IMG/VR virus record: IMGVR_UViG_3300017917_002466
Span: 1-64,000 of that record
DNA: 64,000 nucleotides
Direction: 5' to 3' (one strand)
In this document: one piece after another, positions 14,282-63,301 of the stretch
Layout: each line of letters opens with the position of its first letter
How positions within the stretch are numbered: the stretch's first letter is position 1
Program-made: the position numbers and the translations under genes
Notes under the pieces: model-generated
What the model was told of the DNA's origin: nothing
Database searches by the model: none
Seen by the model: the letters and a program-made list of their open reading frames with translations, nothing else

Positions 14282-14938
14282 TTATGAACGATTTCCAAAT
14301 AATCCTGTCATTGCTCCAATTCCTGCGGCAACTGCATTTTGCTTTGTAAAGATTGTAGACATTCTATCACATCCGAAAGTAAGACTTCTCTTAATACTTT
14401 CATTACTTGTATATGAATAACTTGCTTCAGAAGCTTGCAAAAAGTAAATATCGTGAAACGTATAGTAAACAACTGGAATGCCCATCTTATCTTGAACTTC
14501 TACTACAAAGGCTTTAATTTTCGCCTTATTAGGTGCATTGTAATATCCACTACTATCTATAATATTTCTTTGATTCCAATTTATAAAGTATTCAACATTA
14601 CCCTTTTCATCTTCTTCTAAGGTAACATTAAAATTGAATCCTTCAAATTTTAATACTGGAAAACTTCTTGGAACCTGACCATACATCATTACGACTTTTT
14701 CAAACTCGTATGTCGGAATTGTAACGTCAAGAATATGGAATGGTTGTATGACAGGAGGCATTTCAATCTGTCTTCCAACAGTTACTCCCTGAAAAGGATT
14801 ATAGATAAACAATCCAAAGAACTGCCAGTTTCTTTGAATGGATTTGCCATAAGCACTTTCGGGCTGCCTAAAGTATCTTTGAAGCTCTAATCCGTTTACG
14901 CCTATTGGCATTTTATCGGCTCCCTTGTTACTTTCCAT
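14282..14938 (-). CDS. Tail tube-like protein (gp54/gp19 paralogue)
   Basis: Tube-fold pattern (DVTIPTYEF...YYTFHDIYFL...YSYTSNE..SLTFGCD); downstream of gp19. Confidence 0.6.
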   Translation of the reverse strand: MESNKGADKMPIGVNGLELQRYFRQPESAYGKSIQRNWQFFGLFIYNPFQGVTVGRQIEMPPVIQPFHILDVTIPTYEFEKVVMMYGQVPRSFPVLKFEGFNFNVTLEEDEKGNVEYFINWNQRNIIDSSGYYNAPNKAKIKAFVVEVQDKMGIPVVYYTFHDIYFLQASEASYSYTSNESIKRSLTFGCDRMSTIFTKQNAVAAGIGAMTGLFGNRS

Positions 14939-15576
14939 CCTTTATATACTTTGCCACTTCTAATATGTCTCAACAAAGTCGTTTCATTGAAATTCTTGAA
15001 GTGTTTGCAGATTTCATCAGCACTTATAAATCTAAGATATTGATTAAATCCTTCTAATATGTATTTATACTTTGCCTTAGATAGCTTTATCTTTTGGATA
15101 CTTTCTTTAGAATGTTTGATTCCCATTCTTGGACTATCTTTTCCTTTTTTACCAAACATTGAATTTTTACTTCCTAATTGTGCATTTGAAATTTTTAGCT
15201 TAGTTTCTTCTGAATGAGGCCCGTTTGATTTTCCTAAATGAGATTTACTCATCTTCTTTTTATCTTCTTTAGTAAAACGGTAACCTCTTATAGAATGACC
15301 ACCTTTAGTATCATTATAGCCATTATTATAGGTATCATAAAAGCTTATCCAATGTACTTCTCTTTCATCAAGAGTTTGAAGATTATTAATACCATCTTCA
15401 ACAATATTCCAAACGAATTTATCAAATCCGTATTGAACAATAGCTTTATGAAAACGGGTTTTTTGATATTTAAAAGCTTCGTTACGGTGTTTGTTTTTAC
15501 GATATTCTAAAGAATTAACTGTCTGACCAATATAAGATTTATCATTGATAATATTTGTGGCTTTATAAATAAGCAT
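14902..15576 (-). CDS. GIY-YIG homing endonuclease (Seg-like) with NUMOD3-type repeats
   Basis: MLIYKATNIINDKSYIGQT, EREVHWI, GYNDTKGG, HSEETKLKIS; start set to ATG 15576 after AGGAGG. Confidence 0.9.
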   Translation of the reverse strand: MLIYKATNIINDKSYIGQTVNSLEYRKNKHRNEAFKYQKTRFHKAIVQYGFDKFVWNIVEDGINNLQTLDEREVHWISFYDTYNNGYNDTKGGHSIRGYRFTKEDKKKMSKSHLGKSNGPHSEETKLKISNAQLGSKNSMFGKKGKDSPRMGIKHSKESIQKIKLSKAKYKYILEGFNQYLRFISADEICKHFKNFNETTLLRHIRSGKVYKGWKVTREPIKCQ

Positions 15577-15580
15577 TAAC

Positions 15581-15664
15581 AACCTCCTGATAGGTTAAAA
15601 AATAAAGTGGTAATCCTTACTTATCAGGTTTCAGGAAAAGGGTGGCCACCCTCTGTCCCACTTT
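15581..15664 (-). ncRNA. Structured leader, HEG-associated motif copy 1 (three-way junction plus RBS hairpin)
   Basis: AAAGTGG-GACAG-AGGGT ggcc ACCCT-TT-TCCT gaaaCCTGATAagta AGGA-TTA-CCACTTT, then AACCT atcagg AGGTT. Confidence 0.7.
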
Positions 15665-18393: not shown

Positions 18394-19533
18394 TTACACC
18401 AAATCTTCATCCATAATAGCTGAAGGCTGCCAACTAGGATCACCTAAATCTTCCTGAGCATTAATTGCCTGAACTTCGTCTTCTTCTTTTCCTTCTTCCC
18501 ACTTACCTACTTGTACATTATACTCATCTTCTACATTCTTGGTTTCATAACTTTTTCCATTATAATCTTCTGTAGAAACAAAATATAAAGCCCAAAGTAA
18601 TGCTGTTACACAGTCATCGTGTTCGTGCCTTCCTGCCGCAAAAACATTTGGCTTAATTTCTTCAAATCTACTAAGTTCATAGATTGTTGGTTCGTCACAT
18701 ACTCTAATTCTATCTTTTTCAAGATATTCTTTAAGTAACATATTAGCTTTGAGTTTAGACTTTCTTGTACTTCTAACTCCTAAAGCATTTGGGTCTAAAT
18801 TAATCAAGTCCTCATATTCAAACTCGTGCCAAATTGTATCTGCTACAGTTCCACCAATATCATTGTTTTCAACCATCATATGGGCATTATTATAGAACTT
18901 GGCGACTGATACACATATCTGTGCAAAGTCTCTTGGATTAATCATATTGTTTCTGTAAATTGCTACTTGTTCAATATCATATTCATTTTTAATCCAAAGG
19001 ACTTGAATAACTGAATAATCTTTTCCTATTCCTTTACCAGTATCAACACCAAGCACATATTCTCCGCCGTGAACTGGTTGTCTATAAATTGACAAAAGTC
19101 CATTCCATTTGGTTGCGATTGGGTCTTTAAACTGAATTCTTTCAAGAACGTCCGAATCAATAAGAGTTGATTGACTTCCAAGAAATTTACAATTTTTACT
19201 TATAATATTATTTGTATAATAAGAATTATCAGAAGAATTAACTTGAAGTAATGTATAAACTTTTTCTTTCTTTTTATTCAATTCTATTTTAACTATTTCT
19301 TTTAAACCATTTTTTGTTTCAAGTAAATCGCCTTCAAGAAGATATTTTGATTGTTCTTCATTACCATTTATAATAAAAGTATGGTCAGTAGATACTTCAA
19401 TAATATTCTCATCTTCTAAAGTAAATTTTAAAATTTGAACTTTTTCTAAAACCTCACCGATACCAGCAAAAGTTTTAAAACCTTCAGGTGTTTCAACTTC
19501 AAAGTTTGATATAAATTTAGTTTTGGTTTTCAT
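18394..19533 (-). CDS. gp17: Large terminase C-terminal (nuclease) part fused to split-intein IntC
   Basis: First 114 aa intein-like (STDH block B; VYTLLQV...YYTNNIISKN/C), then CKFLGSQSTLI, YVLGVDTGKG.GKDYS, HDDCVTAL. Confidence 0.92.
   Translation of the reverse strand: MKTKTKFISNFEVETPEGFKTFAGIGEVLEKVQILKFTLEDENIIEVSTDHTFIINGNEEQSKYLLEGDLLETKNGLKEIVKIELNKKKEKVYTLLQVNSSDNSYYTNNIISKNCKFLGSQSTLIDSDVLERIQFKDPIATKWNGLLSIYRQPVHGGEYVLGVDTGKGIGKDYSVIQVLWIKNEYDIEQVAIYRNNMINPRDFAQICVSVAKFYNNAHMMVENNDIGGTVADTIWHEFEYEDLINLDPNALGVRSTRKSKLKANMLLKEYLEKDRIRVCDEPTIYELSRFEEIKPNVFAAGRHEHDDCVTALLWALYFVSTEDYNGKSYETKNVEDEYNVQVGKWEEGKEEDEVQAINAQEDLGDPSWQPSAIMDEDLV
19192..19533 (-). other. Split intein C-fragment (114 aa), ends Lys-Asn, +1 Cys
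   Basis: Hint-domain blocks B, F and G visible in the translation. Confidence 0.85.
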
Positions 19534-20518
19534 TCAATTTTTCCATAAATTGTTTTTCAGTTAAATAGTTTTTAGCCGAATTTATTTTACGAGAACAAAT
19601 ACATAAGTTTTTAAAAGAACCTATTTCTCTCGGATCAATCTTATTTACAAATCCATAATAAACAGAAATTTTATGGTCAATAGTTGGTTGCATAGAATTA
19701 GTATTAAAATGTCTATGATCTATTTTTTCATATTCTAAATTTCCAACTAATTTTTCTCCAGTATAATAATCATATCCATCAAATATTCTATAAACTCTAA
19801 TCCTATGTTTTAAAGTTTCATTTCTAACTAAAGACCAATATTTTTCATATTCAGTTTTAATTTTTCCAATCAACCATTTACCATTTTCTTCGTTACTTTT
19901 TCTTATTTTATCATAAACCCAATCTAATTGAGTATTCCACTCTACACCATATTTTTCTAAACAAGTTTGTTTTCTTTTATTTAAAATTATATTCAATTCT
20001 TCTTCAGTTAAATTTCTCCAAAATTTTTTTCTCTTTTCATTAATTTCTTTTTTATTTTCATTCAAAACTTTCCATCTAGCTTTAATACAAGACTTCATTA
20101 AAAAATTATGACTAACTCCATATTTTTCCTGAATAGTATTACTTTGTTTATTTTTGACATTTTCAACTTCCATAACATTATCGGCACCATATTTTTCTAA
20201 ACAAGTTTGTTTTCTTTTATTTGCTTCTTTTTTAACATCTCTTATTTCAAAAGATTTTTTAATTTTATCTCTAACATATTCTGATTTTTGTTGATGTTTT
20301 AAGCAACAAAATTTAGCATAACCTTTATTGTATCCATAAAATTTAGTTTCTTTTCCACAATATAAACATTTTCCTTCGTCTTCTTTTTTAATATGTTTAT
20401 CATAATATTCTTGTAAACTTATATTATGTTTTATTTTAAGATGATATTGACTAAAACTAATAATAGTTAAATTAGTTTGAATATTACATTCTTTACAAAA
20501 GAATTTTTCTTTTTCCAT
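19517..20518 (-). CDS. Free-standing HNH homing endonuclease with N-terminal Zn finger
   Basis: CKEC...HLKIKH, CLYCGK, KQTCLEKYG repeats, TIDHKISVYYGF...NLCICSRKINSAK. Confidence 0.85.
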   Translation of the reverse strand: MEKEKFFCKECNIQTNLTIISFSQYHLKIKHNISLQEYYDKHIKKEDEGKCLYCGKETKFYGYNKGYAKFCCLKHQQKSEYVRDKIKKSFEIRDVKKEANKRKQTCLEKYGADNVMEVENVKNKQSNTIQEKYGVSHNFLMKSCIKARWKVLNENKKEINEKRKKFWRNLTEEELNIILNKRKQTCLEKYGVEWNTQLDWVYDKIRKSNEENGKWLIGKIKTEYEKYWSLVRNETLKHRIRVYRIFDGYDYYTGEKLVGNLEYEKIDHRHFNTNSMQPTIDHKISVYYGFVNKIDPREIGSFKNLCICSRKINSAKNYLTEKQFMEKLNENQN

Positions 20519-20543
20519 TTTTGACTCCTTTATAAATAAAATT

Positions 20544-20604
20544 TAGAGGGACATATAGGAGATTTGACTCGCCTATCGCAGAACGCCAATTCTGCTTACC
20601 TCTA
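20544..20604 (+). ncRNA. HEG-associated motif copy 4, inverted relative to the HNH gene
   Basis: TAGAGG-GACAT-ATAGG agaTTTGACTCg CCTAT-C-GCAGAA cgccaa TTCTGC-TTA-CCTCTA; TATAAATA at 20531-20538 (+) and 20606-20613 (-). Confidence 0.6.
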
Positions 20605-20706
20605 TTATTTATATTTTTTACTTTTAAAAAATTCCCCAATTTCAATATTTTTTTCTACTTTCATCTTTATATCTCTAATATTTATAATAGTTTGTGAATT
20701 AGCGCA
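20605..20706 (-). other. Split intein N-fragment (33 aa, starts Cys)
   Basis: Block-A-like CANSQTII...IGEF after the extein EFQ. Confidence 0.8.
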
Positions 20707-21510
20707 TTGAAATTCTTGTGCGAATCTGATTGGGTTAGTATCAGCAATGGTTTGCTTTTTCCATTTTTCATCTCTACCAGGAACTTCCCACCAGCCAACA
20801 CTTATAGGAAAGAAGTTATTAGTATTTTCTGTTCTGATAGCCTTAGCCCAAAATTCATAAAAGTGGTTCAAACCCTTTGGGGTTGAAACCATAATAATCT
20901 TGTTGCCTTCATAGCTTGAAATAACTGGATAGGTTGATGTAATGAATTCTTCGGCAACGTGAGAAGGAACCTTGGCAAACTCATCCAAGAAAAGAAGGTT
21001 AACGGTTAAAGAGGTCAAAGCTTCCGCAGAGGTAGCAGATGCTAGTATCCTTGAACCATTCTCAAATTCAACAGACTTTTTATTCCAACCACTTTCTGTT
21101 AATCCTTGTTGTAGCCAAATAGGAAGCATTGTTATAGCTGTTTTAACTCTTTTTAAAATATCTACAGCGGCTTCTTGTTTATGAGCCACGATTGCAACAG
21201 TCTTATCCTTATTGAATAATGCATACCAAAGTAAAAAAATGGTTGAAACAGTAGTCTTTCCACTCTGTCTGGCTATCTTTACGATACAATGTCTCTTGTT
21301 ATTTGGGGTTTCTACGAAGGCTTTTAATACTTTCTTTTGCCATTCATAAAGAACAATCTTTGACTTTCCTTTTTTACCAGTAATAATATAAAAGTAATTC
21401 TCAGCAAAGTAAACAATATCCGTTTTACACTTGATGATTTCATCAATCATCTTTTGAGTATATTCAATCTTTTCACCAACTTTTCTTAAATTAGGATTTC
21501 CAAAAAACAT
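20605..21510 (-). CDS. gp17: Large terminase N-terminal (ATPase) part fused to short split-intein IntN
   Basis: ARQSGKTT Walker A, LLFLDEFA Walker B, VSTPKGLNHFY; ends FAQEFQ/CANSQTIINIRD...IEIGEFF. Confidence 0.93.
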   Translation of the reverse strand: MFFGNPNLRKVGEKIEYTQKMIDEIIKCKTDIVYFAENYFYIITGKKGKSKIVLYEWQKKVLKAFVETPNNKRHCIVKIARQSGKTTVSTIFLLWYALFNKDKTVAIVAHKQEAAVDILKRVKTAITMLPIWLQQGLTESGWNKKSVEFENGSRILASATSAEALTSLTVNLLFLDEFAKVPSHVAEEFITSTYPVISSYEGNKIIMVSTPKGLNHFYEFWAKAIRTENTNNFFPISVGWWEVPGRDEKWKKQTIADTNPIRFAQEFQCANSQTIINIRDIKMKVEKNIEIGEFFKSKKYK

Positions 21511-23001: not shown

Positions 23002-23167
23002 TTAATTTTTTCCAATTTTATTTTTAAATTCTTCTTCTGTCATATAATTTTTTACACTATTAGTACTTCTACTACAAATACATAAATTATTTATGAGTTT
23101 GATTAATATGAGACATTAAACCTTGTAAACTTTTACATTCTTTTCTGCAAATCTTACAAATTTCCAT
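23002..23167 (-). pseudogene. Internally deleted Zn-finger/HNH endonuclease remnant
   Basis: MEICKICRKECKSLQGLMSHINQTH joined out of frame to NNLCICSRSTNSVKNYMTEEEF, matching both ends of 19517..20518. Confidence 0.8.
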
Positions 23168-23172
23168 AATTT

Positions 23173-23244
23173 ACCTCCAACTAGGTTAAAAATTGGGATA
23201 ATCTTTTGAGTTGGCAAAAGAAACGCCCGTCGGCGCTGTCTCCC
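23173..23244 (-). ncRNA. HEG-associated motif copy 2
   Basis: GGGA-GACAG-CGCC gacg GGCG-TT-TCTTTTG ccaact CAAAAGA-TTA-TCCC, then ACCT agttgg AGGT. Confidence 0.7.
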
Positions 23245-23251
23245 TCTATAT

Positions 23252-24001
23252 TTATCTTCCCATTCCCGGTATAACCATTGGGTTTGAAGCCTTTTTCTTA
23301 AAATTCATTTTCTTATCCATTAACATTTGAACAAAAGGTTGAAGACCTGCTTCTCCATTATCTGTTGAAATGATTTCTTGTATCATTGACTTGAAATGTT
23401 TCCAATCATCAAAGTTTCCTGATTTACTCTGATCTGCAATCTCAAGTTGCTCTAATGCCTTTTTTAAATAGTCAAGAGCAGCTTTTCCTGCAAATATTTC
23501 ACTTATATTTGAGTCTTGACCAAGAACTGATTCCTTAACAGGTTTTTCTGTTGAAGTTTCTTCTTTGCTTTCATCTTCTGGTTTATCAGTTGTATCAGCC
23601 TGAGCTTCTTCCTTTGTCTTATGAATAACACCGGCCTTATGGTTTGGTGGTGCATAGATAGTATAGACTTTAAGTCCCTTATCGTCTGCAATAACATTAT
23701 GCTTTGAACCGGCGGGAACAACAAAAGCAGAACCGTCTTTAATTTCTGTTTCTTTTCCGTTAATAACTACCTTTCCAGAACCACCATCAACTCTAAAAAA
23801 CTGATCTACCTTTTCGTGTGTTTCTTCCCCAATATCTTCATTTGGATTTAAAGACATTAACACAAGCTGAAGATGTTCTCCAGTAAAAATATCTTTACGA
23901 AAGTTGGTATTATCAGTAGTATCCTTCTCAATATCAACTACAATTCCCTTTGGTTGTTCTTCTGCTGCTTCTGCTTCTTTAACAAAATCTTTGAATGACA
24001 T
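23252..24001 (-). CDS. Cupin-domain protein with capsid-targeting-like N-terminus
   Basis: LQLVLMSL..EDIGEETHEKVDQFFRVDGGSG...VVPAGSKHNV cupin motifs; begins MSFKDFVKE. Confidence 0.8.
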   Translation of the reverse strand: MSFKDFVKEAEAAEEQPKGIVVDIEKDTTDNTNFRKDIFTGEHLQLVLMSLNPNEDIGEETHEKVDQFFRVDGGSGKVVINGKETEIKDGSAFVVPAGSKHNVIADDKGLKVYTIYAPPNHKAGVIHKTKEEAQADTTDKPEDESKEETSTEKPVKESVLGQDSNISEIFAGKAALDYLKKALEQLEIADQSKSGNFDDWKHFKSMIQEIISTDNGEAGLQPFVQMLMDKKMNFKKKASNPMVIPGMGR

Positions 24002-25890: not shown

Positions 25891-26583
25891 TTATTCTCCT
25901 AAAAATTCATTAAGTTGAATTTGATTATTTCTTTTCTTACCATAAATTTTATGAAATTGTTTATGGCAATGATTACATAAACAAATTCCATTATCAAAAT
26001 CAACTCTTTTATCTTTATTTGAAACAAAATTCTCAATATGATAAGCTATTAAAGTTCCATCATATCTTTCACCAATATACCCACATTTTTGACAAGTAAA
26101 ATTATAATTTTGTAATATTGTTCTTTTCCAACGGTCATATCCATTAATTGATCGACCTTTAATTCTTTCTTTATAACTCAATTTTATTTTTCTTTTTATA
26201 GATTTTTCTATTGCTGAACAATCCAAACATCTTACTGAATTATAAGTAATCTTTTTTCCACAATCTTTACAATAATGTTGTTTAATAGAAACTCCATTTC
26301 TCCATTGTCTATTTCTCTCACCAGAAGTTGCACACTTAACACAAATATTTCTATATTGATAAAATTCTAATTCTGAAATTTCACCACATACATCACATTT
26401 TCTTAAAACTTTAGCTTTAGATTTTGGAAGTAAATCTTTTATACTAACTAAAATAATAGTTCCGTTTTTAATATACCATCTATAACTACTATCTTTATAT
26501 CTTGGAATTTCATAACCAAGACCTTCATAGTGTCTATAATTGCGGCCATTAATACTTACTTCAACTCTATCAGATAGTATCAT
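25891..26583 (-). CDS. HNH homing endonuclease
   Basis: Several CxxC; FTCQKCG...AYHIENF...DNGICLCNHCHKQFH. Confidence 0.8.
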   Translation of the reverse strand: MILSDRVEVSINGRNYRHYEGLGYEIPRYKDSSYRWYIKNGTIILVSIKDLLPKSKAKVLRKCDVCGEISELEFYQYRNICVKCATSGERNRQWRNGVSIKQHYCKDCGKKITYNSVRCLDCSAIEKSIKRKIKLSYKERIKGRSINGYDRWKRTILQNYNFTCQKCGYIGERYDGTLIAYHIENFVSNKDKRVDFDNGICLCNHCHKQFHKIYGKKRNNQIQLNEFLGE

Positions 26584-26965: not shown

Positions 26966-27104
26966 TTAATACATTTTGGTATGTTTAACTAAATTATCTT
27001 CTTTAGTTAATAACTGAAGATTTGTATAATGACACAATTTATTAACCTCTTCTTCAGTTTTAGCAGTCACTAAAGGAATGATATGGTCTATATGATACCT
27101 ATTA
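26966..27104 (-). pseudogene. 3' remnant of HNH endonuclease
   Basis: NRYHIDHIIPLVTAKTEEEVNKLCHYTNLQLLTKEDNLVKH, near-identical to C-terminus of 35027..35755; no start or N-terminus. Confidence 0.85.
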
Positions 27105-27110
27105 TTTTAA

Positions 27111-27167
27111 AGTAGAGATAATCTTTGTGTTGGCAAAGAAAAGTTAATTACTCCCTGTCTCTCTACT
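27111..27167 (-). ncRNA. HEG-associated motif copy 5
   Basis: TATAAATA (27172-27179), then AGTAGAGA-GACAG-P2 (G-U rich)-TCTTTG ccaaca CAAAGA-TTA-TCTCTACT. Confidence 0.7.
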
Positions 27168-27204
27168 TATGTATTTATACTTGAATGACTTCTGAACGCA
27201 AAAT

Positions 27205-27230
27205 GGGGTTGGTGATTTCTCACCAACCCC
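27205..27230 (-). terminator. Intrinsic terminator after major capsid gene
   Basis: GGGGTTGGTGA-gaaa-TCACCAACCCC followed by ATTTT. Confidence 0.85.
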
Positions 27231-29547: not shown

Positions 29548-30201
29548 TTATAATTTTTTCTGCTGAATTTCTTCCAAGAACCTCATCATATAACTTAAAA
29601 CGTGATTTGACATAGACTTAGGATCATATTTTTTGTCAACAGATTTCTGTAAATTCTGAACTGCAACTTCAACAATCCTATCTCCATCCATAATGTACTC
29701 TTTATTTTCCAACACTCCTTCTACAAAGCAGTTAGGTGCTGAAGGGTCTGCAACAATGTCAACGGTAATGAGTTTATAGTCTTCCTTAACGGTCTTACCG
29801 TCAAGGGTTCCAACACCACGAGTTGACATTCCTACGATGATACCTTCATCAACAAGAGTCTTTGCAATCCTTCCCATCGGAGTATCAAGAAGCTTTGCAC
29901 AACCATATCCCACATTATCCTTCATTTCCAAGCTCTCAATAACGTGAGAGACTCTTTCAAGGTTAATCTGTGGATTTTCTGGATGGTCAAGCTCGCCCAT
30001 TGAACGGTTCTTCTTAATCTTGTTCTCAAAGAAATCTTTGACTTCACGAACAAGAATATCTTTGGAATAGACTCTTCCGTTCTTATTCTCAATCTCAGCT
30101 TCTAAGAAAGGGCCTTTCAAACGGAAAATCTTCTTTCCTTCCACTTCTTCTTTGATAACTTCAAGTTTATCAAAGGCAACTATTTCGGTTAAAAGTTTCA
30201 T
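29548..30201 (-). CDS. gp21: Prohead protease
   Basis: NKNGRVYS, MGELDHP, LLDTPMGRI, GMSTRGVG, TVDIVADPSAP. Confidence 0.97.
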   Translation of the reverse strand: MKLLTEIVAFDKLEVIKEEVEGKKIFRLKGPFLEAEIENKNGRVYSKDILVREVKDFFENKIKKNRSMGELDHPENPQINLERVSHVIESLEMKDNVGYGCAKLLDTPMGRIAKTLVDEGIIVGMSTRGVGTLDGKTVKEDYKLITVDIVADPSAPNCFVEGVLENKEYIMDGDRIVEVAVQNLQKSVDKKYDPKSMSNHVLSYMMRFLEEIQQKKL

Positions 30202-32344: not shown

Positions 32345-33349
32345 TTAAACTCCTAATAATTTTTCACTTAAAATTTTATCAATATTTTTAAAATTTTTAT
32401 AACTTATTCTAATTAAATCTATATCATTATTTATGCAATATTCATTCTTGATATTATCATTCTTTTTCGTTATTTCAAAATTTTTAATAGCTTCTTCATA
32501 TTTAATACCACCAAATTGAACTGGTCTAAAGTGATGTTCCCCATCTAACTCAATACAAGTATTTTCTTTAATCAAATAAAAATCAAAAGGTAAACAATTT
32601 TTTAAACCTCTACAATTATCAAACTTTTTTTGTTCTTCATACAATAAATTATTATCTATTATCCATTTTTTAGCTTTTAATTCAGCTAATGAATTAATAT
32701 TACATTCCGGGCAATAAGTTCCTTTTCTTAATAAATCTAAATTTCTATAAAAAATCCCATGTTTTTTACAAATAATAGGTAATTTAATTTTAGTATTCTT
32801 ATAAGTTTCTTCATTAATTAAAGAGAAATCAAAAGGTTCATTTTTATATAATTCTTTTAATTCTTTAATAACTTCTATAAAAGAATTTCTTCTAGCATTT
32901 TCTATTCTTTCTCTAGCACATTTAGGACATGAATGATTTGATTTATGATTATTGGCCATTTGATGAAATAATCCATGTTCTATTCCTTTTTTATCTTTTT
33001 TATGACAAATAATTGGAATAATACTATAATTATTTTCATAATTAAATTCATTTATTAAACTATAATCATATTTTTCGATTCCATAAATTTGTTCAAATTC
33101 TTTAATTAAATCTTTAACTTTAGTTTTAAATTCTGCTTTTAATATATCAATTTTACATTTTGGACACCTATTACCACTCATATGATTATTAATTATTTGA
33201 TAAAAAATTCCGTGTTTTTTACATATAATTGGTATTTTAGATTTACTATTAACACAGTTATCTTCGTTTAATAAAGAATAATCAAATTCATTCCCATGAA
33301 CTTTTTGAAAACTTTCAATATATTCTTTATAACTTTTAGGTTTACTCAT
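32345..33349 (-). CDS. Putative homing endonuclease: repeated Zn modules plus Vsr/EDxHD-like nuclease
   Basis: VHG..FDYS...CKKHG.F...CPKC repeats; LPFDFYL...CIELDGEHHF. Confidence 0.8.
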   Translation of the reverse strand: MSKPKSYKEYIESFQKVHGNEFDYSLLNEDNCVNSKSKIPIICKKHGIFYQIINNHMSGNRCPKCKIDILKAEFKTKVKDLIKEFEQIYGIEKYDYSLINEFNYENNYSIIPIICHKKDKKGIEHGLFHQMANNHKSNHSCPKCARERIENARRNSFIEVIKELKELYKNEPFDFSLINEETYKNTKIKLPIICKKHGIFYRNLDLLRKGTYCPECNINSLAELKAKKWIIDNNLLYEEQKKFDNCRGLKNCLPFDFYLIKENTCIELDGEHHFRPVQFGGIKYEEAIKNFEITKKNDNIKNEYCINNDIDLIRISYKNFKNIDKILSEKLLGV

Positions 33350-35026: not shown

Positions 35027-35755
35027 TTATTTTAAAATTAATTTGTCATGTTTAATTAAATTATCTTCTTTAGTTAATAACTGAAGATTTGTATAATGAC
35101 ATAATCTAATAACATCTTCTTCAGTTTTAGCAGTTGATAAAGGTACTATATGATCTATATGATATTTATTCTTTTCAAGAAATTCTTTTGGCTCAAAATT
35201 AGTATATTTAAGTTTGATATTTTTAAAAAGATATTTTTGAAGTTCTTCAAAAGAGCAACCAAGAATTTGATAAGTTTTAGATTTTTTTGAAAAACCTTGT
35301 CTTGTAAATGAAATCCTTATTAAACTTCTAATATTAGTTATTATTTTATATAAAATATCTTTTTTTCTTCTATTAACTTCATATAAACTTCTATATTCTG
35401 GATTTTTTTCTCTCCACTCTTTATTTTTTTTATTAATTTCTTCTTTATTTGTTTGATATTTTATTTTTCTTTTTTCTCTTATTATTTCTTTATTTTTTTC
35501 ATACCATTCTTTTTTCCATTGTTTATTTTCATTTTTATATTTTAAATTATAATTTTTTTTATAATCTTTATAATGTTCATTATTTTTATTTTTCCAATTT
35601 TCAAATTCATTTTTGATTTTATTCTTATTTTCTAAACGATATATTTTTCTACAAGATTTACAAATAGATTGTATTCCGTTTTTTGATCTATTATCTTTAT
35701 CAAATTTATCTAAAGATTTTTTAATTTTACATTTATTACAAACTTTAGTTTTCAT
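35027..35755 (-). CDS. HNH homing endonuclease
   Basis: CNKC...CKSC N-terminus; YHIDHIVPLS...CHYTNLQLL...DN. Confidence 0.85.
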   Translation of the reverse strand: MKTKVCNKCKIKKSLDKFDKDNRSKNGIQSICKSCRKIYRLENKNKIKNEFENWKNKNNEHYKDYKKNYNLKYKNENKQWKKEWYEKNKEIIREKRKIKYQTNKEEINKKNKEWREKNPEYRSLYEVNRRKKDILYKIITNIRSLIRISFTRQGFSKKSKTYQILGCSFEELQKYLFKNIKLKYTNFEPKEFLEKNKYHIDHIVPLSTAKTEEDVIRLCHYTNLQLLTKEDNLIKHDKLILK

Positions 35756-51418: not shown

Positions 51419-52318
51419 ATGAAAAATCTTATAAAACAATTTCAAAAAGTTCATGGAAATAAGTATAATTATGATAAAGTAGTTTATAATAATTGTAGAA
51501 CTAAAATTTGTATTATTTGTCAAGAACATGGAGAATTTTGGCAACTTCCACTCAATCATAGAAATGGTCAAGGATGTCCAGATTGTGGTAAAAAAGACCA
51601 AGTTAGGCAAGTTCAAAATGAAGAATTTATTCGACGATTAGTAGATAAGTATGGAAATCAATATAATTTTGATAAAACTATTTTTAGAGGTACTAAAAAA
51701 AGAATAATTGTTACTTGTAAACAACATGGAGATTTTGAAGTTTTTCCGTTTAATTTCCTTAAAGGAAAAGGTTGTCCAAAATGTGTAAATGAAAGAGTTA
51801 GTAATGAAAGAAGGAATGATTTTGATAAAATAGTTCAAAAATTTAATAAAGTTCATAATTTTAAGTACGATTATTCAAATTCAGTCTATCAAAATTATTG
51901 TAAGAAAATTGAAATTATTTGTTCAAAACATGGTTCTTTTTGGCAATCAGTCTCAGACCATATAAAAGGAAGAGGTTGTCCAATTTGTAAAAGCTCTAAA
52001 GGAGAAATTATTGTTAGTAATATTTTGCTTAAAAAACAAATTGAATTTATTCCACAAAAAAGATTTGAAGAATGTAAATTATTTAAACCATTGGCGTTTG
52101 ATTTCTTTTTACCAAAAAATAATACTTGTATAGAATATAACGGCATTCAACATTATGAATCTTTAGATTATTTTGGTGGAAAACAAGAATTAGAAGAAAT
52201 TCAAAAAAGAGATGCTATTAAAATTAAATTTTGTAAAGACAATAATATTAAGTTAATAATAATACCATATTGGAAATTGGATGAAATTGAAAATATTTTA
52301 AAAGGATTTTTATTATGA
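51419..52318 (+). CDS. Putative homing endonuclease (Zn-module repeats plus Vsr/EDxHD-like)
   Basis: Paralogue of 32345..33349; LAFDFFL...IEYNGIQHY. Confidence 0.8.
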   Translation: MKNLIKQFQKVHGNKYNYDKVVYNNCRTKICIICQEHGEFWQLPLNHRNGQGCPDCGKKDQVRQVQNEEFIRRLVDKYGNQYNFDKTIFRGTKKRIIVTCKQHGDFEVFPFNFLKGKGCPKCVNERVSNERRNDFDKIVQKFNKVHNFKYDYSNSVYQNYCKKIEIICSKHGSFWQSVSDHIKGRGCPICKSSKGEIIVSNILLKKQIEFIPQKRFEECKLFKPLAFDFFLPKNNTCIEYNGIQHYESLDYFGGKQELEEIQKRDAIKIKFCKDNNIKLIIIPYWKLDEIENILKGFLL

Positions 52319-53375: not shown

Positions 53376-54575
53376 ATGGAAAATCAGCAGCAAATTCCTA
53401 CCAGTAATTACGAAGTGTTTAGACAACATTTGTTGAATCCAAACACAGCTTTTGAACTTTCTGTCCAAGAAGGACAGATAATGAAAATTCAAAAAAATTT
53501 GGTAATATCTTACGTTTCGGATTCGACGGGATGTGGCCACATTAGAAACATTTTTCCAATGACATATCTGAATTCTATTTTTGGAAAAACCGGAAGATTC
53601 AATATCATCATATCACCAGTTATGCTTTTCCAACACGATGTTCTTTTGAGAACAAGAAGTATTTTCTTCCAAAGAACTATGGCACCTGGACATATTCAAG
53701 CTGTCAAAATGTACAAGGATGCACAGAAGAAATACGGATTCAAAATGGTCTACGACATTGACGACTTCATTTGGGATGGTCCGGATGAAGGAGAAACTAT
53801 TCCTCCGTATAACTTTGGAAAAGATGGAATCACACCAGAAGTTCAAAAATCTTCACTTGAAATTATGAACGAAATGGACGTTGTATGTGTCTCGACAGAT
53901 TTTCTTGGACAGTATATTAGAAATCACGGAGTAACAAATCCCAAGATAATTACAGTCTATAATGCTGTTCCTCAATACTTCTGGGGGCCTCAGAGAAAGA
54001 AGCCTATTAAAGAAAAATTGAAGAAGCCAAGAGTTATTTACACTGGAAGTCCCACTCATTATCATCAAATGAAAAAATTAAAAGGAGACTGGGAAAATGC
54101 TTGGTGTGAATGGGTTATCAAAAACGTGGAAAATGGTAAGATTGAGTTTTGTTGTATGGGTGGTCTTCCTTTCTTCTTTGAAGGAATCAAAAATAAAATC
54201 AAAATAGTTGACTGGGTCAACTCATATCAGTATCATCTTCCAATCAAGGATTTCCGTGCAGATATTGGAGTTGCGCCGCTTGTACCAAACTATTTCAACT
54301 ATAGTAAGTCCGATATTAAACATATAGAGTATTGCGCTCTTGGAATCCTAAGTATAGGAACTGTATTTACAAATGGAAGGCCAAGCCCTTATGACAATAA
54401 CCTTCTAAAAGTCCCGAACAACTGCTCTGTACAAGATATAGACAGACTTGTAGACGAATATACAGAACCAGAAAATTACAATAGAATCATTAAACAGCAA
54501 TATGAAATATTGGATAAAACCGGGAGGTGGCTTGAAAGCCCCGAATATGTCAAGATGATTACAGAAATTTTATAA
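53376..54575 (+). CDS. Glycosyltransferase (GT-B-like)
   Basis: GCGHIR, YDIDD, YTGSPTH, DIGVAPL..N.FN..KSDIK.IEY. Confidence 0.75.
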   Translation: MENQQQIPTSNYEVFRQHLLNPNTAFELSVQEGQIMKIQKNLVISYVSDSTGCGHIRNIFPMTYLNSIFGKTGRFNIIISPVMLFQHDVLLRTRSIFFQRTMAPGHIQAVKMYKDAQKKYGFKMVYDIDDFIWDGPDEGETIPPYNFGKDGITPEVQKSSLEIMNEMDVVCVSTDFLGQYIRNHGVTNPKIITVYNAVPQYFWGPQRKKPIKEKLKKPRVIYTGSPTHYHQMKKLKGDWENAWCEWVIKNVENGKIEFCCMGGLPFFFEGIKNKIKIVDWVNSYQYHLPIKDFRADIGVAPLVPNYFNYSKSDIKHIEYCALGILSIGTVFTNGRPSPYDNNLLKVPNNCSVQDIDRLVDEYTEPENYNRIIKQQYEILDKTGRWLESPEYVKMITEIL

Positions 54576-54585
54576 ATAATTTTAG

Positions 54586-54669
54586 AGTATGTTAGGACAG
54601 GGAGGCATCCTTTTCTGACACGAACAGAATTACTGACATACTTCTTTCAAATACCTTATTCGTGGAGGT
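54586..54669 (+). ncRNA. HEG-associated motif copy 3
   Basis: TATAAATA 54571-54578; AGTATGTTAG-GACAG-GGA ggca TCC-TT-TTCTG acacgaa CAGAA-TTA-CTGACATACT; ACCT tattcgtgg AGGT. Confidence 0.72.
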
Positions 54670-54673
54670 TCCT

Positions 54674-55232
54674 ATGAGTTGCTTTATTATCTACAAAACT
54701 ACGTGTCTTGTTAACCAAAAAATCTATGTTGGTCAGCATAATACTTCAGCTAATGATGGTTATTTAGGCACTGGAAAAATAATCAAGTTAGCCATTAGAA
54801 AGTATGGCAGAAAAACTTTAAAAGAGAAACAATAGAGTTCTGTACTTCTGCTAACGTAAACGAAAGAGAAGTTTACTGGGTTGGTAAGTTAGATTCTACG
54901 AACCCTCAAATCGGTTATAACATCACTAGAGGGGGAGATGGTGTAATAATTGTTGGTAGAAATAATCCTATGCTTGGAAAAAACAAAGTCAAAATTCAAG
55001 AAATTTGATGAGTTTAAATCATCAAGATTTTAATGGAAAGTTAAATCCAAGATACGGAAAAGGAAAATACCTTTATATTTTTTCATCCAAAGAAAAAAAT
55101 ATTAAAACTAAAAGTCTCACTGAATTTTGTAAAAATCAAAATCTTAATTTGAATACACTTAATTGGTGTTTTAGAGTTGGTCGAAAATTTCATAAAGGGT
55201 GGGAAATTAAAAGAATCTTGTTAACTTCTTGA
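54674..55232 (+). pseudogene. GIY-YIG (Seg-like) endonuclease with two frameshifts
   Basis: MSCFIIYKTTCLVNQKIYVGQH..GYLGTG / NFKRETIE..EREVYW..GYNITRGG / ..LMSLNH..; both shifts in A runs. Confidence 0.8.
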
Positions 55233-59769: not shown

Positions 59770-60711
59770 ATGAAATGGAATAAAGAAATTTTTATTAAAG
59801 AATCTAAAAAAGTTCACGGTGATAAGTATAATTATAGCAAAGTAGAATATATTAATAGTAGAACTAAAATTCAAATTAAATGTTTAGAACATGGTTTTTT
59901 TGAACAACTTCCTTCCAATCATATTAGAGGATATGGTTGTCCTCGGTGTGCTATTAATAATAGAACTACAAAACAAAAAATTTTTATTAAAGAAGCTAAA
60001 AAAGTTCACGGTGATAAGTATGATTATAGCAAAGTAGAATATGTTAATAATCATGTTAAGGTTGCTATAATTTGTCAAAAACATGGAATTTTCTTACAAG
60101 AACCACAAAATCATTTAAGAAATCATGGTTGTCCTAATTGTATGGTTAATAATCATGTCTTAAAAAATTCTTTTAATAAAGAAATTTTTATTAAAGAAGC
60201 TAAAAAAGTTCACGGTGATAAGTATGATTATAGCAAAGTAGAGTATGTTCAAAGTACAATTAAAGTTTGTATTATTTGTTCAAAACATGGTAAATTTTGG
60301 CAAACTTATAATTCACATATTCATCAAAAAAGTGGTTGTCCAAGTTGTAAACAGTCTAAAAATGAAATTTTAATTGAAAATTGGCTTAAAAGTAAAAATA
60401 TTAAATTTATTCCTCAAATGAAGTTTAATAAATGTCGTGGTAAGAAAAGGCCATTACCATTTGACTTTTATCTTCCTGATTATAATACTTGTATTGAATA
60501 TGATGGAGAACAACATTTTTATCCGATTGATTTGAGTTTTGGACAATTAACAAAAAAAGAAATTAAAGAAAAATTTCAACAAACTAAATTAAGAGATCAA
60601 ATTAAAAATATTTTTTGTAAAAACAATAATATTGAATTAATAAGAATTTCTTATAAACAAAATACTAAAAAGGAACTTGAAAAATGGTTGAAGGAAAAAA
60701 CTTTAAATTAA
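59770..60711 (+). CDS. Putative homing endonuclease (Zn-module repeats plus Vsr/EDxHD-like) splitting gp43
   Basis: Three KKVHGDKY(N/D)YSKVEY repeats; LPFDFYL..CIEYDGEQHF. Confidence 0.85.
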   Translation: MKWNKEIFIKESKKVHGDKYNYSKVEYINSRTKIQIKCLEHGFFEQLPSNHIRGYGCPRCAINNRTTKQKIFIKEAKKVHGDKYDYSKVEYVNNHVKVAIICQKHGIFLQEPQNHLRNHGCPNCMVNNHVLKNSFNKEIFIKEAKKVHGDKYDYSKVEYVQSTIKVCIICSKHGKFWQTYNSHIHQKSGCPSCKQSKNEILIENWLKSKNIKFIPQMKFNKCRGKKRPLPFDFYLPDYNTCIEYDGEQHFYPIDLSFGQLTKKEIKEKFQQTKLRDQIKNIFCKNNNIELIRISYKQNTKKELEKWLKEKTLN

Positions 60712-62081
60712 GCAAAAATTATAGTTGTCCATTATCCAAGCAAAGAACTTGGGAAACTATTGAAGGCCCATTTGAGTGCGGCGGAATTTATTATCGCTCA
60801 GATAAAAAAGGTGTTCTTCCATCAATTGTCGGCGACATATACAATGAAAGAAAAATACTAAAGAAGAAGGGATTTATTGCCGATGCTATTGCCAAGGGTA
60901 GACCGATTGAAGGATACCCAGCCAATCTTATTGAAGCAGTACATTCGGAAGGAGAAACTGCCGAATACTACGATTCTCAACAGCAGATTCGTAAAATCCT
61001 TATCAATTCTGTATATGGAGTTCTTGGTAATCCATATTTTAACTTCTATAATATCAACAACGCAATAGCTGTAACATTGGGTGGTCAAGACCTTATTCGT
61101 TACCTATCTAATACATTGAATGATTATATGAAAAAGAATTGGCATACTCTTGGGCCAAGACTTTATCCAGAGTTCAAGGGAGAATGGAAACCTTTGACTC
61201 AAGACGTAGTAATCCTTCTTGATACAGACTCTAACTACGTTTGTTTACAAGAAATTGTCAAGAATATGGGATTGGATTTCAAGACTAATCAGGAATTTCT
61301 TGACTGGGTAAACGACCTTGATAAGAGGTTCTTTAAACCTTTCTTTGACAAGATTTTGAAAATCTATGCAGACCGATATGGTGTGCCACAAATGATTGAG
61401 TTTAAGAGAGAAAAGGTTATCACTCAGAAATTCATCCTTGCCAAGAAGAAGTATGCTGATGAAGTTATTGCTGATGAAGACAAAATATATGTTGACCATC
61501 CGAAGATTTCAACTACTGGAATTGAAGTTGTCAGAACAGATACTCCTAAATTCAGCCGAGAAAGAATTATGGGAGTTCTTCAAAAGATATTTGAAGTTCG
61601 TGGAAAAGATAGACACGTTGTAATGCAAAGACTTCGTCAAATTCACGATGAGTTTTTGAAGGCAACTCCAACTGACATTGCCAATCCAAAGGGAATCAAA
61701 GACTACCAGAAGTATGCTGAGCCAGTTGAAACCTATCTTGCTAAGAATGTAGCTTCATATCCTAAGCATTTACCAATTCACGTAAGAGCCGCAATCAACT
61801 ATAACTTTACTATTGCCAAGTATAAGCTTCCTCTTATGGAAATCAACAATGGAACCAAGATGAAGTTCATATATGTTGCACCCCAAAAGAATGAGCTTAA
61901 ACAAAATATTATTGGCTTCATTAATGAGTGGCCAAAAGAATTTGAAGCAATGTTTAAAGTAGATGTTGAAGAACAGTGGCAAAAAGTCTTCCAAGACGTT
62001 ATTCAAAGATTTTTTAATGTACTTGGATGGGGAAATATTGAAATTGAAGAAAATACTTTGTCAGACTTTATTCAGTTTTAG
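60684..62081 (+). CDS. gp43: Family B DNA polymerase, C-terminal part (motifs B, C and thumb)
   Basis: KGVLPSIV, RKILINSVYG, LLDTDS, KKKY; ATG 60684 with AAGGA 9 nt upstream. Confidence 0.9.
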   Translation: MVEGKNFKLSKNYSCPLSKQRTWETIEGPFECGGIYYRSDKKGVLPSIVGDIYNERKILKKKGFIADAIAKGRPIEGYPANLIEAVHSEGETAEYYDSQQQIRKILINSVYGVLGNPYFNFYNINNAIAVTLGGQDLIRYLSNTLNDYMKKNWHTLGPRLYPEFKGEWKPLTQDVVILLDTDSNYVCLQEIVKNMGLDFKTNQEFLDWVNDLDKRFFKPFFDKILKIYADRYGVPQMIEFKREKVITQKFILAKKKYADEVIADEDKIYVDHPKISTTGIEVVRTDTPKFSRERIMGVLQKIFEVRGKDRHVVMQRLRQIHDEFLKATPTDIANPKGIKDYQKYAEPVETYLAKNVASYPKHLPIHVRAAINYNFTIAKYKLPLMEINNGTKMKFIYVAPQKNELKQNIIGFINEWPKEFEAMFKVDVEEQWQKVFQDVIQRFFNVLGWGNIEIEENTLSDFIQF

Positions 62082-62092
62082 CTGAAAACCCC

Positions 62093-62121
62093 TTGACAAA
62101 ATCTAATGAAAATGTTATCTT
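62093..62121 (+). promoter_or_regulatory. Sigma70-type promoter upstream of uvsX
   Basis: TTGACA-N17-TATCTT with TG extension. Confidence 0.75.
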
Positions 62122-62152
62122 TAAAGAAATACATTACCATCAAGGAGGTATT

Positions 62153-63301
62153 ATGCGATCATTATATGATATAATAATTAAAGATAAGGAAACCAAAGAC
62201 AGTCCACCACTTTCTTCTTATTTGTTTACAGAAGATGAAAAGATTGAGTTTCTTTCAACTAACGTAATTTCGCTTAATCTTCTTTTTAGTGGAAGAGTTG
62301 ACGGTGGAATCCCTAAGGGAAGGATTTCAATGATTTCAGCCCCGTCAATGCTTGGTAAGTCTTTCATTGCATATGGACTTGTTAAGAACGCACAAAAGAA
62401 GGGGATGCAGGTTTGTATCATTGATACTGAGAGAGCCTTTAGCTTCCAGTTCGCACAAGCTATCGGAATTGATATTAGTCCAGATAAACTTGTTGTTCTT
62501 CAAGAAAATGGAATCGAAGAAGTGTCTGGTATGATTATGACAATCTGTAACGAAATTCCAAAGAATGAAAGAAAAGATGTTCTTTTCATTATTGATAGCT
62601 GGGGTTCTTTGGTCACTTCCAAAACACTTAATAATGCACTTGTCGGAAACGATGCCGCAGACTTTACAATTCCAAAGAAGAAAAACAATCTTGCCAATAT
62701 CATTCTTAATACCAAAGCAACCTATTTCATTGCCAACCATGTTTATGATAACGTCGGTGGAATGGGAGATACTTTGAGTGTGCCTGGTGGAAGAAAAATC
62801 GTATTTAATAGCGAATGTGTTATCTTAGGAAGAAGCCGAGCAAAGGAAAAGAAGTCTGCATCAGACCCAACAATTGTCGGTCATATTATTACAGCTGAAA
62901 CATACAAGTCAAGATGGTCTAAGGAAAAGTCTAAGCTTCAGTTTAGAATTAAGGTAGATGGTGGTTTAGATATTTTCTATGGTATACTTGATGATGCACT
63001 TGAAGCAGGAGTTGTAGATTCCCCAGCCGCTGGTTCGTTCCGTAGACCAATTATTAATAAGAACGAAAAGATTAAAGAAGCAAATATTTACAATTCAGAA
63101 TTTTGGCTTCCAATTTTTAAGGAAACCGATTTCAAGAAGTGGCTTGAAGCAAAGTATACATTTAGCAGTCCTTTGGATATTTCCAAAGAATCGGATATTT
63201 TGAACATGCTAAATGGAGAACCAATAGTAGAAAATCTATTAGAAGAAAAGAAGGAAGAAAATACAGAAGAAAAGAAAACTTCATCCAAAAAGAAAAAATA
63301 A
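62153..63301 (+). CDS. uvsX: RecA-like recombinase UvsX
   Basis: SAPSMLGKS Walker A, IDTE, IIDSWG, GGRK; start reassigned to ATG 62153 after AGGAGG. Confidence 0.92.
   Translation: MRSLYDIIIKDKETKDSPPLSSYLFTEDEKIEFLSTNVISLNLLFSGRVDGGIPKGRISMISAPSMLGKSFIAYGLVKNAQKKGMQVCIIDTERAFSFQFAQAIGIDISPDKLVVLQENGIEEVSGMIMTICNEIPKNERKDVLFIIDSWGSLVTSKTLNNALVGNDAADFTIPKKKNNLANIILNTKATYFIANHVYDNVGGMGDTLSVPGGRKIVFNSECVILGRSRAKEKKSASDPTIVGHIITAETYKSRWSKEKSKLQFRIKVDGGLDIFYGILDDALEAGVVDSPAAGSFRRPIINKNEKIKEANIYNSEFWLPIFKETDFKKWLEAKYTFSSPLDISKESDILNMLNGEPIVENLLEEKKEENTEEKKTSSKKKK

Follow-up and report, generated by a model that had tools for sequence, protein, structure and literature searches.

In an uncultured T4-like phage and its relatives, the same folded RNA of about 90 nt is found in front of several unrelated homing endonuclease genes (HEGs), and one of its loops pairs with the ribosome-binding site of the gene, which most likely keeps these selfish nucleases barely translated. 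The structure is shown by covariation, whereas repression is inferred from geometry alone, in the absence of expression data. The full element comprises, in order, a T4-type late promoter, P1, GAC(AG), P2, UU, P3, UUA, P1', an A/U-rich linker, a small hairpin holding the ribosome-binding site (P4), and the start codon. The P3 loop is complementary over 6 to 8 bases to the P4 loop, which is the 5' half of the Shine-Dalgarno sequence. The element is thus larger than the three-way junction of the original prediction, whose inference of a conserved cis-regulatory RNA module shared between HEG families and gating endonuclease expression was supported, although toxicity of the proteins, which it also assumed, was not shown.

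We analyzed the first 64 kb (the window) of the IMG/VR contig IMGVR_UViG_3300017917_002466 (253,664 bp). The window has 32% G+C, and its genes identify a T4-like myovirus, with the gp23 major capsid protein, gp15, tail sheath, tail tube and large terminase. Nothing similar at the DNA level was found among 50,697 deposited phage genomes: a megablast search with the locus and a blastn search with a typical leader gave only chance hits at E=10. The closest cultured gp23 proteins are about 34% identical and come from cyanophages.

The presence of the five predicted copies was confirmed using a structural descriptor (P1 of at least 4 bp, GACA[GT], two hairpins, TTA, P1'). It found copies 1 to 5 at 15604-15664(-), 20544-20604(+), 23195-23244(-), 27110-27168(-) and 54585-54643(+), plus one weak, chance-like hit, i.e., 6 hits against 0.99 +/- 0.94 in 200 dinucleotide shuffles, and the real copies have far longer stems than the thresholds. 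All five fold into the three-way junction as the minimum-free-energy structure, with z-scores of -0.8, -2.7, -2.6, -2.6 and -4.7. We next collected relatives from 32 loci identified through the capsid protein, from an exact-pattern scan of viral contigs and from a scan of metagenomes, and we built a covariance model, R1, from 20 copies on other contigs plus copy 1. Over the window, this model returned copies 1, 4, 3, 5 and 2 as the five best hits (84.5, 35.9, 26.7, 20.7 and 19.5 bits), and the next hit scored 12.7 bits at E=0.7. The latter, at 62057-62153 (+), has no junction, but CCCCUUGA lies about 50 nt upstream and is complementary to UCAAGGAGG at the ribosome-binding site of the next gene, and it may represent a simpler long-range anti-Shine-Dalgarno pairing. 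The features of the five copies are as follows.

15604..15664 (-): copy 1, three-way junction of the loop-E subtype; P1 15658-15664 / 15604-15610, GACAG 15653-15657, P2 15639-15652 (a perfect 14-nt palindrome), P3 15614-15636 with an internal GAA/AGUA loop, UUA 15611-15613.
15622..15628 (-): copy 1, P3 loop segment CCUGAUA (anti-Shine-Dalgarno).
15581..15596 (-): copy 1, P4 hairpin holding the ribosome-binding site (AACCU-aucagg-AGGUU); UAUCAGG at 15586-15592 pairs with the P3 loop, and the start codon is at 15574-15576.
14902..15576 (-): intact GIY-YIG/NUMOD3 homing endonuclease gene, inferred to be controlled by copy 1.
20531..20538 (+): TATAAATA late-promoter motif of copy 2, overlapping the 5' untranslated region of the minus-strand HEG.
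20544..20604 (+): copy 2, inverted (putative trans) subtype; P1 20544-20549 / 20599-20604, GACAU 20550-20554, P2 20555-20576, P3 20578-20595, UUA 20596-20598.
20563..20570 (+): copy 2, P2 loop UUUGACUC, complementary to GAGUCAAA in the Shine-Dalgarno region of the minus-strand HEG mRNA (20520-20527).
19517..20518 (-): DUF7487 zinc-finger HEG that splits the large terminase gene, the presumed target of copy 2.
23195..23244 (-): copy 3, three-way junction with a simple P3; the P3 loop CCAACU is at 23209-23214, and GATAAATA lies at 23249-23256.
23173..23186 (-): copy 3, P4 hairpin holding the ribosome-binding site (ACCU-aguugg-AGGU); AGUUGG at 23177-23182 pairs with the P3 loop, and a 26-codon zinc-finger remnant starts at 23167.
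27110..27168 (-): copy 4, three-way junction; TATAAATA lies at 27172-27179, P4 is lost, and an HNH C-terminal remnant follows (about 26969-27095).
54571..54578 (+): TATAAATA late-promoter motif of copy 5.
54585..54643 (+): copy 5, three-way junction with a simple P3; the P3 loop CACGAA is at 54619-54624.
54653..54669 (+): copy 5, P4 hairpin holding the ribosome-binding site; UUCGUG at 54659-54664 pairs with the P3 loop, and the start codon at 54674-54676 is followed by a frameshifted GIY-YIG gene.

Several points of the original prediction had to be amended. It placed every copy at the 5' end of an HEG or HEG remnant, but copy 2 lies next to the 5' end of its HEG on the opposite strand and cannot act on it in cis. 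Only copies 1 and 2 are next to intact HEGs. The exact TATAAATA precedes copies 2, 4 and 5, whereas copy 3 has GATAAATA and copy 1 has TATAATAAA. Finally, the genes called zinc-finger HNH belong to Pfam DUF7487.

Analyses of the region downstream of P1' revealed an A/U-rich linker of about 8 to 20 nt, followed by P4, whose UCU/AGA or AACCU/AGGUU stem contains Shine-Dalgarno bases, with the start codon a few bases later. The P3 loop reads ACCUUNNN, and the P4 loop reads NNNAAGG. In 22 distinct copies, the two loops are Watson-Crick complementary over 6 to 8 contiguous bases in all but one. At least 7 contiguous bases pair in 77% of cognate loop/site pairs, against 4.4% when loops and sites from different copies are combined, and the mean predicted duplex energy is -7.2 kcal/mol for cognate pairs against -2.9 kcal/mol for noncognate pairs. 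The complementarity noted originally for copy 1 (CCUGAUA/UAUCAGG) also holds for copy 3 (CCAACU/AGUUGG) and copy 5 (CACGAA/UUCGUG), with three unrelated sequences. As the P4 stem holds the rest of the Shine-Dalgarno sequence, the ribosome-binding site would be locked twice, and the endonuclease would be translated only at a very low level.

Pairing was then assessed on a model-guided alignment of 37 sequences, with the kissing helix written as a pseudoknot. Over 27 pairs, 91.3% of cells are paired against 74.9% in shuffles, 23 of the 27 pairs have changes on both sides, and there are 165 double-change cells against 47 in shuffles. None of 500 shuffles reached any of the observed measures, and sliding the 3' partners by 1 to 3 columns dropped pairing to 45 to 60%. 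The MAFFT and covariance-model alignments put P2 one column out of register in half of the rows, and the P2 counts therefore understate its pairing. The variable part of the kissing helix is 95.4% paired, and all five of its variable pairs covary (for example AU 12, UA 9, CG 5, GC 3). The two most variable of these pairs rank second and third in a blind mutual-information scan, behind one P1 pair. RNAalifold on the plain MAFFT alignment recovered P1 and P4 on its own. Invariant or recurrent G-U pairs and the orientation relative to promoters and genes point to RNA read on the listed strand.

The element is associated with homing endonucleases. Of 29 ORFs that start behind a copy, 27 hit nuclease or HEG families, of which there are at least five: LEM-3-like GIY-YIG, GIY-YIG/NUMOD3/SegE, DUF7487 zinc-finger, DUF723+DUF4379 (Hef-like) and HNH. 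The two exceptions, behind the leaders at L173:404-494(-) and L179:846-939(-) on two metagenome contigs, are DnaD/RepA_N-like replication-initiator genes. In the capsid-anchored loci, which were chosen without reference to the motif, all nine distinct strong hits precede an HEG or an HEG remnant. The converse is weaker, as about half of the HEG-like genes in the window lack the motif. A search with the DUF7487 HEG protein found only close relatives, and we therefore compared HEG proteins with the gp23-anchored loci by blastp. At least five more HEG-like genes of the window (HNH-like, and Hef-like DUF4379/DUF723), at 25894-26583(-), 32351-33349(-), 35033-35755(-), 51419-52315(+) and 59770-60708(+), have no leader, making about ten HEGs or remnants in 64 kb together with the five motif-linked loci. 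The genes at 51419 and 59770 are preceded by TATAAATA and by a simple ribosome-binding-site hairpin or nothing obvious. Copies also persist without a working target, as for copy 4, for locus L024, where only 9 codons are left, and for contigs L308 and L312, where the HEG is absent. We found no trans target for the loop of the orphan copy 4, its single match lying inside a gene and being at chance level.

An exact TATAAATA lies just upstream in 17 of 41 copies, and a one-mismatch version in 10 more, against a background of 21 sites in 128 kb of window sequence counting both strands. In 16 of the 17 exact cases, the motif lies 1 to 6 nt (mostly 3 to 6) upstream of P1. As T4 late transcripts usually start about six bases after this motif, the transcript should begin at the foot of P1 and carry the complete fold. 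The spacing in most copies does not support transcripts starting inside P1 and so destroying the fold. A base-paired 5' terminus might protect the transcript from 5'-end-dependent decay, or the fold might terminate or insulate read-through from the upstream structural gene, with ribosome-binding-site pairing being secondary. The position of the predicted start and the location of copies directly after highly expressed late genes, the tail tube gene and gp23, would fit this idea. However, we consider it unlikely, because the copies are not scored as intrinsic terminators beyond chance, the tails after P1' are A/U-rich rather than U-runs, and the strongest covariation outside P1 is in the helix with the ribosome-binding site, which a stabilizer would not need. 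Only the separate hairpin at 27205-27230, a strong bidirectional intrinsic terminator with an 11-bp stem directly after gp23 and just upstream of the promoter of copy 4, qualifies as a terminator.

Copy 2 shows a different arrangement. The large terminase gene (18394-21510, -) is in two pieces, the N-terminal ATPase part at 20605-21510 and the C-terminal nuclease part (Terminase_6C) at 18394-19533, with the DUF7487 HEG and copy 2 between them. Copy 2 has its own TATAAATA pointing away from the HEG, and its P2 loop, UUUGACUC, repeats the antisense of the Shine-Dalgarno region of that HEG, GAGUCAAA. A pattern scan found four further distinct members, in each of which the P2 loop tracks the Shine-Dalgarno region of its own HEG: UUGGACUC/GAGUCCAA, UUUGACUCC/GGAGUCAAA, AUACACUC/GAGUGUAU and ACACUCCU/AGGAGUGU. 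P2 and P3 show compensatory changes across these members. This suggests a divergently transcribed, antisense-like small RNA on the same scaffold that would pair in trans with the HEG ribosome-binding site. L308 and L312 carry an inverted junction identical to that at L313:3749-3825 but lack the DUF7487 HEG, and the breakpoint falls exactly at the TATAAATA.

This polymorphism raises the possibility that the element is mainly a DNA-level recombination or mobility cassette, with shared sequence providing patches of homology for HEG swapping and any RNA fold being incidental. Five copies are present in 64 kb next to genes that vary between genomes, and near-identical leaders (P2 GGGUAGCUCCC) precede different HEG families and also one of the two DnaD/RepA_N-like genes (loci L046, L041, L004 and L173). 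In addition, a truncated leader at L004:5757-5838(+) shares its 5' 43 nt with the full copy at L004:14413-14498(+) in the same genome and then diverges, which looks like a recombination or deletion scar. Such cassettes have a precedent in T4-like phages (PMC4122927). Nevertheless, homology patches need identical sequence rather than compensatory change, and here the stems and the kissing helix differ between copies while pairing is kept. Strand-specific G-U pairs and a fixed position relative to the ribosome-binding site also point to an RNA function. Recombination is therefore probably a consequence and not the selected function, and this reading is very unlikely.

Plain occlusion does not account for all conserved features, as a simple hairpin would be enough to hide a Shine-Dalgarno sequence. 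The junction strands GAC and UUA (rarely UGA or UAA) and the A-U and G-U pairs at the base of P2 are essentially invariant across all subtypes, amounting to about 10 nucleotides. In the commonest subtype, to which copy 1 belongs, P3 carries GAA opposite AGUA, which appears to correspond to the sarcin-ricin/loop-E consensus and would stiffen the arm presenting the anti-Shine-Dalgarno loop, but copies 2 to 5 have a plain P3, indicating that this module is dispensable. In the loop-E subtype, the center of the P2 loop is a self-complementary tetranucleotide or hexanucleotide (AGCU, GAUC, UCGA, UGCA, CAUG, GGCC) in 28 of 31 copies, four P2 hairpins are perfect 14-nt palindromes, and adjacent central columns covary, which no intramolecular hairpin explains. 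RNA dimerization and quasi-palindrome correction, a mutational bias, are candidate causes.

These features might instead belong to a regulated switch, in which the junction, the GAA/AGUA loop and the P2 loop sense a small ligand, a phage late protein or the concentration of the RNA itself through dimerization, and open or stabilize the kissing helix to time HEG translation. HEGs have to be expressed at some point, and no route to derepression is visible. For the loop-E subtype, RNAalifold preferred an alternative inner fold (alignment A4, columns 12-14/34-36 and 40-44/50-54) pairing CAG of the junction with CUG of P3, and CCUU of the anti-Shine-Dalgarno loop with AAGG of the P3 3' strand, which would free that loop and could be an "on" conformer. 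However, this pairing consists of invariant bases and so has no covariation support, it is absent from the simple-P3 copies, and the conserved core is small for an aptamer. A common, transferable on-switch for otherwise unrelated nucleases, with its scaffold re-used as a trans-acting small RNA, remains a tentative idea. Self-cleavage or binding by the cognate endonuclease has no support, and one leader shared by unrelated proteins argues against protein-specific autoregulation.

No Rfam family was found to match the element. Scans against Rfam 15 gave no hits at gathering thresholds in the window and, at E up to 10, no hit overlapping any of the five copies as a match to the motif, and a permissive scan of the 1.1-kb locus L039, which holds a typical copy, gave nothing at the motif. 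Two subthreshold hits on opposite strands at 29755-29976, Bacillus-plasmid RNA (25.1 bits against a gathering score of 31) and mir-2833 (28 bits), suggest a structured intergenic region upstream of the capsid module. A tRNA-like element was also rejected, as ARAGORN found no genes in the window and GUUCGAAA-like P2 loops occur in only a minority of copies. In a wider scan filtered for P1 pairing, about 10 metagenome hits were true copies and no genome hit looked genuine, although this does not establish absence from bacterial genomes. Full-text searches found no description of the motif, but a 2023 catalogue of about 8,500 predicted RNAs from IMG/VR may contain it unnamed (PMC10690425). These data suggest that a whole clade of uncultured T4-like phages tolerates its selfish genes through one interchangeable RNA module. 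The element adds a well-supported class, with a rare kissing loop onto a Shine-Dalgarno sequence, to the short list of structured regulatory RNAs in phages. It provides a sequence marker for HEG cassettes and their remnants, and a compact design for tight translational silencing whose specificity is set by 3 to 4 loop bases.

Several known systems resemble parts of this element. Riboswitch expression platforms that bury the Shine-Dalgarno sequence in a pseudoknot (preQ1-II, SAM-II) and three-way-junction aptamers (purine) likewise combine a compact junction or pseudoknot fold with Shine-Dalgarno pairing, but no ligand is known for the present element and its junction strands appear to differ from those of the known classes. 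PeSL (promoter-early stem-loop) cassettes of T4-like phages are also short, repeated promoter-plus-structure modules that flank variable genes and appear to take part in modular shuffling (PMC4122927). However, they combine an early promoter with a terminator-type hairpin and have no junction, no pairing with the ribosome-binding site and no HEG specificity. In kissing-loop antisense control (CopA/CopT, RNAI/RNAII, hok/sok) and with the cyanophage S-PM2 antisense RNA over an HEG (cited in PMC10690425), structured loops start RNA-RNA pairing that blocks translation, which the copy 2 subtype may resemble. In most copies here, however, the two loops lie on the same molecule, and the putative trans subtype shares its scaffold with the cis form.

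The closest systems are the hairpins that sequester the ribosome-binding site of T4-family HEGs (I-TevI, I-TevII, I-TevIII, segB, Aeh1 mobE), which are the documented means of translational control of these genes (PMC2988022). In both cases, a cis RNA structure linked to a TATAAATA late promoter hides the Shine-Dalgarno sequence of an HEG in a T4-like phage, with limitation of HEG translation as its purpose (inferred for the present element). The regulatory theme is known. The fold, the kissing loop, the sharing across HEG families and the inferred cis/trans duality appear to be new. The T4-family structures are single, gene-specific hairpins with the late promoter inside them, such that late transcripts lack the inhibitory arm. 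Here, one conserved three-way junction is shared by at least five HEG families, the Shine-Dalgarno sequence is held by a loop-loop helix plus a mini-hairpin, and the promoter lies upstream, so that late transcripts should keep the whole structure.
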